Shown here piece by piece: positions 884-28,408 of a stretch of DNA of 64,000 nt (its first letter is position 1; every line of letters starts with the position of its first letter). The stretch spans positions 15,676,722-15,740,721 of the forward strand of contig OZ037766.1 of NCBI GenBank assembly GCA_964035545.1. The letters are read 5' to 3'. The notes below the pieces were generated by a model, which saw only the letters and a program-made list of their open reading frames with translations, was not told the DNA's origin and ran no database searches. Origin of the DNA: Bugula neritina (lineage: Eukaryota > Animalia > Bryozoa). The position numbers and the translations under genes were made by a program.

Positions 884-3800
884 GCGAGATTATTCTTCTA
901 TTAAACCTACACTATGGAGCAGAATGTGAGCAGCAGAATTCAAGATGGCCGACATCAACCCTTCCTGCAGAGATACTTAAATGGGAAAAGACCTTGTCAG
1001 CAAATATAGGCAGGCCTTACACTGTTTTAGATATAGCCTTAAATAAGCTTGATATAAAGTAACTTGTAAACAGTGTTGACTCAGTTTTGAGTAATTCAAG
1101 TAATATATTTATAACTTGAATAATCTCCTGAATTTTCTAGCAATAATTTATATAAATCAAAAAATTACATTTGCAGTCATAGTCATTTTTGAGCACGATT
1201 GTTTTAGATTTCAAAGTTGTTGACACATGCAGTGACCCTGATATAGCTGCTAAGGTAATATCTGAGAATATTCCTTATACCTGGACCATAGCAGATCTGT
1301 CCATTGGAAGAGCAAATAACAGTGTCTGTACAGCCAATGGGAGCTCTTCTATAAATATAGGTGAGAGGTCAAGCTTGCAATCATCAACATCTGTTGGAAA
1401 TTTTCTTTCATTCTATGGTCAACTTTTCATTTACTAAATTAATAATTACCTCCTGCTTTACCGTAGTGATACATAAAGTAACAGAAATTACTATAAATTC
1501 CTCAAATATTCTTTATTATAAACTGTAAAATATTGCTAAAAATATTTATATTGTACACTAGCTACAAATTATTGCTATAAATAGCCATTATTGTAGTTGT
1601 AATAATATTCTAAAGAATTTATTTGATGTATGTATTATTATATTTTAGATTAACGTACTTCATGTGTTGCAACAAACTAACAGTAGATCAAATATAAAAC
1701 ATCAAGCATTGCTCATTAAAGCTCAATAAAATGTTTCTTTATTTTTTGATTAAATAAAGATTTTATTGTAACCATGACCAATGACTATGTTACAAATATT
1801 ACAGCACAATTTGATAATTGGTGATTTCAATTGACACATGCACATAGTATGACATCATATGCATTATTGTCTTATAGCTGATTGGACATAGTCTATCAAT
1901 TTTTTAAACACACTTATGAGCTGCTGCTAAGATTTTGCAATAATTGAAAATAGGCTGTTATAGGAGTTCATTTAGGTTACGAGTTAGCTTAATGAAGACA
2001 AGGCCCATAGGAAAAAGCTTTATGGGTCTCAGGCTAAGCAGGCAATAGCATGATGCAGAGCTTAAATAGCTTTTGCTGTTGTAAAGGGTGGGGGGTATAT
2101 TAATTCCTGAGAAAAAATACCTAAAGCCCTCATCGATAAAAATATAATTGGTGCTTACTAAAAGAAAGACTAAACACAGCTACATTTTGCTAACATAGAA
2201 TTTATAGACTTCATTGATAAAAGTTTATTCAAAGGATTAGTTAAAACAACGAAAGTTAGTGGTGCAGTATTTTTAAAAAGCTATCAGATGAAAGCTTAGT
2301 TGTGTCAGACCATGCAAACAATTTATTTTTTATAATGCTTTCGAAAATGTGATCTGTTTTTGTAGGATTTATATCTGAGATTCTTCCAACTGGATATGAA
2401 TTGAGTGAAGGGTTGTTGGGTCAAGTTGATGTGCCTCTCATTTTAACAGCTGATTGGCCAAACAACTCAGACATATCTCTACCAGGTGTCATTCGAGTTG
2501 ATGAAAACTTAGGACTCAATATTGAGGTAAAATAAAAATGCTACAGCTTTTCGTGTCTATCACAATCAGTTGTAAGCAGTTGTGCAGGTGCAATCTGCAA
2601 AAGATTTTAATGCTCTGCATAACACCAGTTATACCTATGCAAGACTTTCAAGCAACATTTGTTTGACGAAAGAGAAACATGGTCAATTTTATTACATTAT
2701 TAGGGCAATGTTTCAAAATTAATTTTTTGACTTGCTAATATTTCAAGGTGCTAATAATTTCAACATTTAGGTTAGACACTAGCATATAGAGTAATTATGC
2801 CGCTTTCAATGTTTTGAAGCCACACGCCTGATTAGAATAGAGTGTAGTATTTTAGCTACATTGCTCTGTACTTTTTTATACATATATTCATTTTTGGGAA
2901 ATTTACCATGAATTTACTTAAAACTTGAAGTGTGGTCTTGTATTTGTTTTGAATGAATTGCTTGACCAGAAGATGCGATTGAAACAAGAGGATAGTTACT
3001 TTCATTGGCAACAGCCGTTATTAACTAAAATCTTGAAAGTCGTCTAACCAATTTTTTAAAATTTTTCAAAGTAGTTTGATGCTTTCATAAACAAGTTGAA
3101 ACCTTTTAAAACTTATTCTAAAAATTATCAGGAAACATTATGCTTTATTTTCTACTATATGCTAAAATTAGAGATATTTAATAATTCATCAATCATGAGC
3201 TCTGAGTAATTGACCTAGAAGATTTATATTTAGTCCCCTTTCCAGCCTGTTAGTTAAAGTACCAAATAGAGATACAAGTAGTGTACTTTTGACTCACTTG
3301 ACTGTTGGTGAATAAGGTTATTTTGTATTAAAAAGCTCATAAAAACAGGTGACTAACTCTCTAATAATTCTTCTGTTCTCTACTTCAGTAGTGACTATAT
3401 TGTTACCTAACTATGTTGTTACATAGCTCTCCATAATATATTATATGTTTGTCTGTTGAGATGCTGAGGGTATGCGTGAAGTAAAATATATTTTCCCTTA
3501 ATAGAACCATAGTGCACGATATATTTCAATATCTTGCGCAGCTAATATATCGGATGTCTAGTCAGTGTATTGCTTACATTCTATTTGAGCGCTGACACTG
3601 GGAAAAGTTGTTTGCCCAGTAACATATTTTATTTTAGTTCCTTCTCTCTACAAACTATCCGAAATGCTTCAATTACTCATTCTTCCATCTGGGTAGCAAA
3701 AACATATGCTGTTTTTCTTCTTTTCTCTATAAATATATCCTTTTTAATTCAAACATAGTTTCTGTTTTATCAGTATCAAAGTGTGCGTTGCCCATTCCAA

Positions 3801-26200: not shown

Positions 26201-28408
26201 AACTGTTGTTGGAGGTTAATTGTTTCATCAATGTTTTCCCAAGAAATTTTTTGTGTACTGCGTTATAGAATCAAGTTACGATGTGTTTATTTTTAGACTA
26301 ATTCCTTCACCACTCACTTGAAGAATATTAGGTTACCTACAATTGATGATAGGAATTATTGGCTCTCCACCCTGGTTCAGGAAGTTGGTAAATGTAAGAT
26401 ACGGGGAAACTTTCACAGCACTTATAACAGGGAATGTAACTCCAGAGATGTAAGGTTGACAAATTTAGAAGGGGAATCTTACTCGTCCCATCTGATGAAA
26501 GCTATTACAGCTACAATCTATGGTCTACGGGCCATCACCCTAGATGAACATAAAGAGTTCGTATTCCATGCCAATACTATCAAAGATAGATACAGAAAGC
26601 TTTTGAATGTCAAAATACCACAAGTTCTTGAAAATAGAGGTCCAAAAACTCACAATCCATTCACAGAAGCTGGAAATGGCAAGGTTGGCTATTCTATCTA
26701 TAATATTAAATTGGAAGGGAACAACAAAATACCTACATATGTCTTGGTTCAACGGACAGGCTCGAGTGTAAATGATAAACTGGGTACAGCTCAAAACTTG
26801 ATTGCGTTTTACGATGGGTCAAATATCCCGACTGCAAGTATAACTAGCACCATTCCAAAATGTGTCATATCTACATCAAACTCGGCATCTTCAGACAACT
26901 CTGGCAGCCACCTTACGACACCACTCATGGTGATCACAATTCTGCTCGGTATTCTTCTGACAGCAATAATCATTGCTGTAATCATTATAGGTAAGCTTTC
27001 ATTCACTTGGTTTCAATTTTTTTATTTAAAGAACTTAAAATTACTATCATTATAATAATTGTTGTTTTACATTAATTTGGTACACCACTAGTTAGAATTG
27101 TTTTTAGTACTCTGCTACCGAAAAAAATGGGAACAGCTGAAACACAACAAAGAAGGTGAAAGAATATCGATGCAAGTTGTAGATGGGAAAGATGAAGGGT
27201 ATGATGAGATATGTAAGTTTTGCTTAATATTTTTAATACTCTATAAGTCGGTGAACTTTAAATTAATTTTCTTCTCTGCCAAATGAATTATAACCCATGG
27301 TATGAAGTTTTGCTGCTTCAATTTATTTAAAGAAAATTGCCAATGCCAATGAATACTATACCATACTTTTTGCAAGAATAGCTGATATAAAACTGGTTAA
27401 AAAAGCTGTGAAATTATGGTCGAAGTCTTTTATTATAGTTGTGTCTGCTTGAAACCAATACATGTTTCCTTCCACTTTGATTCTGTTTTGTATTAAAATT
27501 TTCATGTGAATTATTGTTAGCAAGCAAAGTAAACTGTATTAGTATGCATGTTGATTGCTGATATAATTACTAGTTGCCAACCATAGCTGCATAAACTTCC
27601 AAAATGATGGCACATACATCTTGGCTGTTATGCTGTCAATGTAACTATTTCAGCATACATGCATTACATGTCTGAAGCTCAAAGAGCCAACATCTTGAGA
27701 TTTGTTGCTACAAACCCAGGAACAGCCCCTCCCACCTACATGTTGTCATCAGGTAGCTACAACTCCTCGCTATATTTATCAGTCATATATGCGGTTATGT
27801 AGCCATTAAGATAGAAGATTTCAGACAGCATCAAGTCAAGTTTGTATTTTAAATTTAATCTAAAAAAAACTGCTGGAGTTCCTAAAATTTGCATGAGGGG
27901 GAAATTGAAGAAAACTTTTAGAAATAACTCTATTAAAAATGCATGGTATATACATGGCGAACAGAATTTATTCATATTTACTGTCAAATCAAATTTATCA
28001 CTAAAATATAAATAAAATATTAAACAATGATGACACATGGATTTTGTAGAGTATTCGAAGAAAAGTGAGACAGAATATAAAGTGCCTAGAAATAATCAGC
28101 CTATTTCTGAAAGTCTTGGCCTTCCAAACCCAGCATTCAGTGGGTCTGGCGAAAGTGGGACATCTACAACAACAAGGTCATATGCTAGTGAAAGTACTCT
28201 TAGTGCTTCTAAATTTAATAATGAGCTTGTTTATGAGGAAGGTTTGTCAGTAAGAGGTGGTCTTTGCACTGTTCCCATACCAGCCCCTAGGGCAGCGACC
28301 CCCTGTGACACACTCAGCTCTTCTGGAACCACTTATGCTGTTCTAACTTCACCTCCCAGCGTACCGCGTGATGCTGGCAAAGAAGAGGAAAAAGAAGACA
28401 TGGTGTAA
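14216..28408 (+). CDS. Tandem double Venus-flytrap single-pass membrane receptor, paralog B (complete, ~1134 aa)
   Basis: Exons: 14216-14315 (signal peptide-like MESYRALLLAITTWLLHCTPVQP), 16019-16150, 16885-17037, 19230-19387, 20359-20575, 21164-21361, 21934-22112, 22693-22865, 23003-23285, 24126-24350, 25104-25259, 25954-26127, 26297-26990, 27108-27212, 27654-27752, 28050-28408. Total 3405 nt, divisible by 3, all GT-AG. Motifs [56 protein letters not shown]. One TM helix at ~26924-26990 continuing into VLCY-RKK. Confidence 0.88.
15563..15671. mobile_element. Short fold-back (palindromic MITE-like) element
   Basis: Pairs about one axis: TGCAGTA 15581-15587 with TACTGCA 15647-15653, GGGGTTCTCA 15592-15601 with TGAGAACCCC 15633-15642, TTTAGAGTT 15604-15612 with AACTCTAAA 15622-15630. 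An outer imperfect pair GAGTTGGAG/CTCCAAACTC flanks these. Confidence 0.55.
24865..25036. repeat. Compound microsatellite (GCAC)n-(CA)n-(TA)n
   Basis: Seen directly, in an intron of paralog B. Confidence 0.95.

Follow-up and report, generated by a model that had tools for sequence, protein, structure and literature searches.

The window considered here is a stretch of 64,000 nucleotides of bryozoan DNA (Bugula neritina, assembly GCA_964035545.1, contig OZ037766.1, positions 15,676,722 to 15,740,721 of the forward strand), and it carries two intact paralogous genes, A and B, which lie head to tail on the + strand and encode single-pass membrane proteins. Both proteins begin with a signal peptide, after which come, in the same order, an N-terminal module of divergent sequence, a linker of the pattern C-x3-C-x3-C, a membrane-proximal Venus flytrap domain (VFT2), a Ser/Thr stalk, a transmembrane (TM) helix and a cytoplasmic tail. 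It is very probable that these are intact single-pass proteins with flytraps of the metabotropic glutamate receptor (mGluR) type and that they belong to a conserved lophotrochozoan family. Positions below are those of the window, and all exons of A and B are on its + strand.

Gene models, conservation and integrity

The exon sets were derived from the stop-to-stop frames of the + strand and from the alignment of A with B; the frames were checked exon by exon, the junction codons were computed separately, and domain and homology searches were likewise run on single exons. Genes A and B consist of 16 exons apiece, every one of them open in frame, and they share one series of intron phases (1,1,1,0,1,1,0,2,0,0,0,0,1,1,1), as an earlier reading made from the sequence only had proposed. 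The coding sequences are multiples of three and end in a stop codon, with 3366 nt (1121 aa) in gene A and 3405 nt (1134 aa) in gene B. All splice junctions are GT-AG, with the sole exception of a GC donor after gene A exon 2 (1010-1011); the donor of this intron 2 reads AG|GCAGGC, and gene B has GT at the equivalent site. The same sequence-only reading had seen a signal peptide in B only. That of B is present in exon 1 (14216-14315), whose start codon is orthologous to the start of a 1134-aa gene call in B. neritina, and gene A has one too, in an exon 1 that lies 681-792 nt before the window (window -792..-681; L002:5929-6040). Gene B exon 1 starts 1 kb beyond the gene A stop, and a further paralog, Z, with the same exon order as A and B, lies directly upstream of A, so that Z, A and B form a three-gene head-to-tail array.

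The window is syntenic with B. neritina contig VXIV02003143.1 (the sequence meant wherever the window is compared with B. neritina), with 85-88% DNA identity including the introns. Over gene A exons 4-16 the synonymous divergence (dS) is 0.21 and the nonsynonymous divergence (dN) is 0.047, which gives a dN/dS of 0.22; the alignment has no gaps except one of 27 nt in the Ser/Thr stalk, which leaves the frame intact, and the gene A stop codon and tail motifs are kept. Purifying selection on the architecture is supported by these values. The B. neritina annotation also contains an ANF_receptor product of 1134 aa that begins at the ortholog of gene B exon 1 and has the length of the gene B model. 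As a separate observation, the last intron of the gene A ortholog differs by about 4.7 kb, present in B. neritina and absent here, or the reverse (window 12882-12886 versus L003:12182-16953).

Genome-wide searches covered the 216-Mb assembly. A profile of exon 13 finds at least 11 loci, three on this contig, C2 (Z, A and B), with seven more on C5 and a single one on C4. The family is larger than this count, since three intron-poor ANF_receptor open reading frames (ORFs) on the minus strand are not in that list: C2:5803145-5805601 (L012), C1:2641407-2644016 (L013) and C1:2652906-2655356 (L014). These ORFs of 816-869 aa run uninterrupted through the second half of the first flytrap (VFT1), the Cys linker and VFT2, a region that takes at least nine exons in A and B, and one matches positions 287-1026 of the family profile with an E value of 2.6e-58; this profile rests on the full-length proteins of four relatives (Lingula, chiton, Aplysia and Batillaria). 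The ORF at 5.80 Mb of C2 (L012), the sole one translated, continues through the TM helix. The architecture is thus seen in these paralogs without any assumption about splicing.

It could be argued that the models are artefacts of annotation or products of decay, that is, pseudogenes of truncated G-protein-coupled receptors (GPCRs) of class C, or in each case two genes, one for a secreted protein with the N-terminal part and one for a receptor with a single flytrap. The non-canonical GC donor of gene A, the splitting of the gene A ortholog into three fragments in the B. neritina annotation, a Tegillarca protein (P0028) with a single flytrap only, and the failure to find an RNA run for the stretch speak in this direction. 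Against it stand the 16 open exons with matching phases in both genes, the dN/dS of 0.22 over exons free of gaps, the annotated 1134-aa product that equals the gene B model, orthologs in three phyla that are single proteins with the same linker, the uninterrupted paralog ORFs that join the VFT1 half, the linker and VFT2 (one of them translated through the TM helix), and the lack of a 7tm_3 domain within 1.5 Mb. The pseudogene or split-gene explanation was rejected on account of dN/dS, the matching intron phases, the orthologs of other phyla and the paralog ORFs without interruption, and it is considered highly improbable.

The two extracellular modules

The membrane-proximal flytrap is the better recognised of the two modules, and exons 8-13 of both genes fall in order on positions 526-1071 of the family profile. 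In gene A, exon 8 (7660-7829; family profile 526-562, E 2.6e-5) carries the Cys linker at 7726-7752 and the first strand of VFT2; exon 9 (7959-8244; family profile 568-652) forms part of lobe 1; exon 10 (8536-8772) lies within VFT2; exon 11 (9255-9410; family profile 734-772, a weak match) belongs to lobe 2; exon 12 (10034-10207; family profile 781-828) contains the motif LSDTW; and exon 13 (10638-11379; family profile 847-1071, E 2.8e-22) holds the end of VFT2, one Cys, the Ser/Thr stalk and the TM helix at about 11298-11379. The corresponding exons of gene B are exon 8 (22693-22865, with the Cys linker at 22759-22785; family profile 527-562), exon 9 (23003-23285; family profile 569-655), exon 10 (24126-24350), exon 11 (25104-25259; placed by the family profile), exon 12 (25954-26127; placed by the family profile and by residue mapping) and exon 13 (26297-26990; family profile 834-1069, E 4e-26), in which the end of VFT2 and the stalk are followed by the TM helix at about 26924-26990. 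The three-Cys linker that had been read as SLC..DC..KC is therefore present in both genes, and each protein has three Cys after the N-terminal module and one after VFT2.

Exon 10 matches the ANF_receptor profile with 39.8 bits in A and 40.2 bits in B (profile positions 67-136), and its best PDB matches are mGluR1, 3, 2 and 5, with an E value of 1.5e-7 for mGluR1; exon 9 matches ANF_receptor positions 3-70. The assignment of VFT2 to the mGluR-type flytraps agrees with these matches and with the placement of exons 8-13 on the family profile. Single-exon PDB searches with exons 9 and 12 gave chance matches only (an RxLR effector and designed TIM barrels), and these candidates were discarded. Along the proteins, the ANF_receptor profile reaches position 159 at exon 5 and then starts again at position 3 in exon 9, which indicates two successive ANF-type modules.

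With respect to ligand contacts, the exon 10 alignment places Ser, Asp and Tyr of gene A at positions that we take to be those of mGluR1 Thr188, Asp208 and Tyr236. A Ser at the Ser165 position (exon 9) and an Asp at the Asp318 position (exon 12) are found in both genes through the alignment of Lingula with mGluR3 combined with hmmalign. According to these alignments, VFT2 keeps Ser, Ser, Asp, Tyr and Asp at five positions that contact the alpha-amino acid in mGluR1. The concept of a consensus amino-acid-binding motif has been described previously, with Ser165 as its most conserved residue (PMC3703292).

The N-terminal module is shorter and more divergent, being about 100 aa shorter than VFT1 of Lingula. 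In gene A, exon 2 (884-1009) would supply the first beta strand and helix and exon 3 (1208-1360) the motif VVDTCSDP; the former aligns with residues 37-75 of Lingula VFT1 and the latter with residues 91-103 (LDTCGNP), both weakly and in order, followed by exon 5 (4694-4910), which aligns with residues 187-247 and forms the flytrap-like core. Exon 5 alone reaches ANF_receptor, with 24.5 bits in A (profile 111-158) and 25.9 bits in B against a cut-off of 25.4, over profile positions of about 111-159. Exon 4 (2366-2526; 90% nt identity to B. neritina, gapless), exon 6 (6035-6232; kept in paralogs Z, A and B) and exon 7 (7005-7186; 95% nt identity to B. neritina) map to no flytrap. In gene B, exons 2 (16019-16150), 4 (19230-19387) and 7 (21934-22112) were placed by the alignment with A, exon 6 (21164-21361) follows from the exon model, and exons 3 (16885-17037) and 5 (20359-20575) complete the module.

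The presence of a first flytrap in A and B, as proposed from the sequence only, finds weak or borderline sequence support in exons 2, 3 and 5 and none in exons 4, 6 and 7. In a hand alignment to mGluR-type motifs, the module has LTADW in place of the flytrap motif SYASTS and Ile in place of a conserved Tyr, so that it seems to be without the amino-acid-binding signature. It is tentatively read as a degenerate flytrap. Similarly, the description of these proteins as having mGluR-type motifs in doubled form suits the family, in which both flytraps of Lingula find mGluR structures as their best matches, but it does not suit A and B cleanly, whose N-terminal module is shorter and mostly unrecognisable.

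Three exons of this module differ from the remainder of the gene in their similarity between paralogs. Exons 3, 5 and 6 of A (1208-1360, 4694-4910 and 6035-6232) and of B (16885-17037, 20359-20575 and 21164-21361) share 91-96% DNA identity (96% for exon 3), with dS of 0.13, 0.18 and 0.56, respectively, and beyond the exon borders the similarity is lost; synonymous sites in the remaining exons are saturated (dS >1). Paralog Z shows a like pattern at the protein level in its exons at L001:5319-5462, 6548-6751 and 7095-7286. This near-identity looks like exon-limited gene conversion or an unusual constraint.

Membrane helix, tail and absent output domains

Each gene encodes one TM-grade hydrophobic stretch, with a KD19 of 3.06 in A and 3.25 in B, while the next highest stretch reaches at most 1.7. 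The tails that follow comprise 150 aa in A and 187 aa in B, in keeping with the earlier description of one Cys, a Ser/Thr stalk, a single TM helix and a tail of about 150-190 aa that ends in a stop. In gene A, exon 14 (12102-12170) encodes a basic juxtamembrane stretch and YDQI, both kept in B. neritina; exon 15 (12513-12611) encodes NPGSAPPKY, with 30/32 aa identical in B. neritina; and exon 16 (12907-13190) ends in DEEDEHMF and a stop whose position is the same in B. neritina. In the gene B model, exon 14 (27108-27212) encodes YDEI, exon 15 (27654-27752) encodes NPGTAPPTY, and exon 16 (28050-28408) runs from EYKVPRNNQPI to EEEKEDMV and the stop. Both tails therefore carry YD[EQ]I, NPGxAPPxY, EYxxPxNNQPI and an acidic run with a hydrophobic end, all of them kept in B. 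neritina; neither the paralogs on C5 and C4 nor the proteins of other phyla have these motifs. They may serve as sorting, WW-domain, SH2 or PDZ ligands, and the previously proposed re-wiring to adaptor and tyrosine-kinase signalling would depend solely on such short Tyr/Pro motifs in a disordered tail.

Known output domains were searched for and not found. No Pfam family, including any kinase domain, matches the tail exons of A and B (exon 16 of either gene among them) or the tails of the orthologs; NCD3G matches no exon (E up to 1) and no full-length ortholog (E up to 0.01); and Lig_chan gives no match, the second module being of the ANF_receptor type with a single TM helix. In the whole genome, about seven loci carry 7tm_3 (PF00003), and on this contig the closest match, which with 29.9 bits stays below the cut-off, is 1.57 Mb off; for Guanylate_cyc (PF00211) the corresponding distance is 2.2 Mb. 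No 7tm_3 or cyclase exon thus lies within 1.5 Mb of A and B, and the proposal that neither a seven-transmembrane (7TM) nor a cyclase output module is present is upheld: each gene has one TM helix and no 7tm_3, NCD3G, kinase or cyclase domain.

In place of a 7TM or cyclase region, gene B is followed by repeats, then by a transporter gene of the major facilitator superfamily (MFS), and then by a Capicua-like gene. The former is a multi-exon membrane transporter gene (34101-41309, +) with a weak MFS_1 match, which by eye resembles an SLC45 sugar transporter; the latter (51935-58594, +) shows DUF4819 (47.9 bits, 51935-52531) and an HMG box (57.3 bits, 57683-57907). The window is AT-rich, with about 31% GC, and contains TA microsatellites (5471-6030 and 12300-12500) that are intronic or intergenic. 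A dispersed repeat, about 225 nt long and with copies 70-77% identical, occurs at 6639-6863 (+) in a gene A intron and at 29041-29268 (-) downstream of B, with further copies at 45012-45145 and L003:157-358, and it is also found in B. neritina. CA/CG-rich tandem repeats at 24842-25000 and 32164-32589, intronic or intergenic, translate as THARTHAR.

The lack of an output domain can also be explained by accessory, decoy or clearance subunits, which would pair with the flytraps of class C GPCRs as modulators or would internalise ligand through YxxPhi and PPxY motifs in the manner of the natriuretic peptide receptor NPR-C. Class C receptors are obligate flytrap dimers, and the genome has true 7tm_3 loci, about seven in number, with which such subunits could pair. 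YD[EQ]I conforms to the YxxPhi sorting consensus, and PPxY has the form of a WW ligand of the Nedd4 type. However, the family loci (at least 11) outnumber those of class C GPCRs, and the tail is long and conserved across species beyond the two sorting motifs, so that this explanation is regarded as rather unlikely.

Meanwhile, the tails and the N-terminal module have a bearing on another explanation, in which these are cell-recognition or synaptic-organiser proteins whose flytraps bind other proteins in the manner of the amino-terminal domains in ionotropic glutamate receptors, and whose acidic-hydrophobic end binds PDZ scaffolds. Hydrophobic C-termini are found in A (EHMF), B (EDMV), Watersipora (EMIV), Lingula (NVFV), Aplysia (SSEV) and Tegillarca (EVII), the chiton ortholog (GAYV) being no counter-example, and the small-ligand signature appears to be lost from the N-terminal module in the hand alignment. 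On the other side, VFT2 retains that signature, the apparent last exon of paralog Z, as read from its ORF, ends in the non-hydrophobic NSHNN, and the PDZ assignment is pattern matching alone; a role in cell recognition is therefore judged improbable.

A lophotrochozoan family and its possible mode of action

Genes A and B belong to a lophotrochozoan receptor family that is shared with molluscs and brachiopods and whose proteins are already in public databases, as indicated by the following searches. An exhaustive HMMER search with exon 13 returned 35 proteins, and the named relatives come from Bugula and Watersipora (Bryozoa), Lingula (Brachiopoda), and Aplysia, Batillaria and Tegillarca (Mollusca); a chiton (Liolophura) protein was added by a separate protein search. 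The Lingula, Aplysia and Batillaria proteins each contain two ANF_receptor stretches and no 7tm_3, and, like the chiton sequence, they begin with a signal peptide, have a Cys motif behind each flytrap and a single TM helix, and end in a long disordered tail. Lingula LOC106158345 (XP_013389729.2), Aplysia LOC101856598 (XP_005105500.2), Liolophura LOC135471244 and Batillaria KAG5699497.1 have the same order of parts as A and B. They differ in having a full-length VFT1 that scores as ANF_receptor, whereas the module in A and B is shorter and divergent and only one Cys follows VFT2; in addition, Lingula VFT1 seems to retain most of the amino-acid signature in a hand alignment, unlike A and B.

Structural comparison of the Lingula protein gives the same affiliation. 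The best PDB match of its VFT1 is mGluR7 (9e-32) and that of its VFT2 is mGluR3 (2e-51), and the top 60 PDB matches of both flytraps are all mGluR and CaSR, with no natriuretic peptide receptor (NPR) among them. An AlphaFold model of the Lingula ectodomain, of moderate confidence (mean pLDDT 65, pTM 0.49), superposes with both halves on mGluR flytraps, with residues 14-491 on 5cnk_B (Z 34.8, root-mean-square deviation (rmsd) 2.9, 414 aligned) and with residues 521-995 on 5cnj_A (Z 34.8, rmsd 3.1, 428 aligned). A homodimer prediction for Lingula VFT2 scored 0.45 versus 0.42 for the control and is given no weight. A small tree groups the four VFT1 sequences in a single clade with a support of 100/98, which places the duplication before the brachiopod-mollusc split.

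Word-indexed protein searches with the Lingula protein and with the four-sequence alignment returned almost only the queries and are uninformative on the range of the family. A 105-member cluster of the ESM Atlas has ANF_receptor and no 7tm_3, and it bears the automatic name 'Metabotropic glutamate receptor 6/7/8', which is the kind of label that had been predicted for such genes. A literature search on tandem or double flytraps and on single-pass flytrap receptors found no paper on the family, only papers on bacterial BvgS/EvgS/CdgH and on Venus kinase receptors; the architecture therefore still appears to be uncharacterised, as had been supposed, and databases call the relatives 'uncharacterized'.

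Several known systems can be compared with this architecture. In class C GPCRs (mGluR, CaSR and T1R), the likeness lies in the mGluR-type VFT2, with best PDB matches to mGluR1-8 and five contact positions kept, and in the cysteines that follow the flytrap where the cysteine-rich domain would begin; here, however, there is no complete nine-Cys NCD3G and no 7tm_3, and two serial flytraps stand on one TM helix with a disordered tail. The closest described single-pass flytrap receptors are the Venus kinase receptors, invertebrate proteins with a class-C-like flytrap that occur in Lophotrochozoa and are activated by amino acids such as L-arginine (PMC3703292, PMC4026697). They combine one flytrap with an insulin-receptor-like tyrosine kinase, whereas A and B have two flytraps and no kinase. 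The sequence-only reading had mentioned neither these receptors nor the multigene nature of the family.

NPR-C and the receptor guanylyl cyclases also have an ANF_receptor ectodomain on one TM helix, and NPR-C too is without an enzyme domain; theirs is a single flytrap of the NPR subtype, to which NPR-A and NPR-B add kinase-homology and cyclase domains, while the flytraps here are of the mGluR type and the tail measures at least 150-190 aa, reaching about 580 aa in Aplysia. Ionotropic glutamate receptors likewise stack two extracellular clamshells, the outer one of the ANF_receptor type, but their inner clamshell is a type II fold split by pore helices, and here both are type I without a channel. 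The bacterial sensor kinases BvgS/EvgS have tandem extracellular flytraps and one helix per chain to the cytoplasm (PMC4352136); their binding-protein folds are of type II and their output is a histidine kinase, and the resemblance is one of analogy and not of homology.

The favoured explanation, given a probability of roughly 0.6, is that A and B are array members of a single-pass family whose ectodomain derives from an mGluR-type class C receptor and whose output passes through the tail. According to this explanation, the flytrap and the first cysteines of the cysteine-rich domain of such a receptor would have been duplicated in tandem before the brachiopod/mollusc split, and one helix would have taken the place of the 7TM bundle. 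VFT2 probably closes when it binds an amino acid or some related small molecule, and by analogy with class C GPCRs, natriuretic peptide receptors and Venus kinase receptors its closure would re-orient a dimer. The sole possible output would then be the disordered tail, whose YD[EQ]I, PPxY, EYxxP and acidic-hydrophobic C-terminus would bring in kinases, adaptors, ubiquitin ligases or proteins of the endocytic machinery. Within the Z/A/B subfamily, degeneration would have affected the N-terminal module, three exons of which are near-identical between paralogs; because of this near-identity the module may be a constant part with a role in dimerisation or in binding a partner, and diversification would fall to VFT2 and the tail. 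Taken as a whole, the mechanism in which a small ligand closes VFT2, the dimer rearranges and the tail motifs act as output is proposed tentatively, with the odds somewhat against it.

Four observations weigh against this explanation. Exons 4, 6 and 7 remained unmatched in profile-profile comparison with the family alignment and the intron-poor paralogs, which gave nothing significant. The five signature residues of VFT2 are necessary yet insufficient for amino-acid binding. There can be no single signalling route that is general to the family, since the tails are not conserved between subfamilies. Lastly, none of the RNA runs was found to hold the stretch; the sole run that does hold it is of unrecorded kind and is taken for DNA, as 69% of the sampled words are present, introns and exons alike.

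A broader form of the favoured explanation is that of a multi-phylum receptor class in which class-C amino-acid sensing, with no GPCR or enzyme domain involved, would be passed through the tail to phosphotyrosine, adaptor or ubiquitin-ligase signalling, and in which bryozoan arrays, their outer module constant and their inner flytraps variable, would serve chemosensation, for instance of larval settlement or food cues. In this extended form it is a speculative and doubtful proposal.

The known outputs of flytraps are 7TM bundles, cyclases, kinases and ion channels, and a family with two mGluR-type flytraps, one helix and nothing but a disordered tail would add to them another readout of this sensor, as yet unstudied. 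The family documents the duplication of a class C GPCR ectodomain and its transfer to a single-pass scaffold. Automatic 'metabotropic glutamate receptor' labels on double-flytrap genes inflate GPCR counts. In this genome the double-flytrap single-pass loci (at least 11, together with the intron-poor ones) exceed the 7tm_3 loci (about seven), and a family that outnumbers the class C GPCRs in this way may explain part of a chemoreception that is poorly known.

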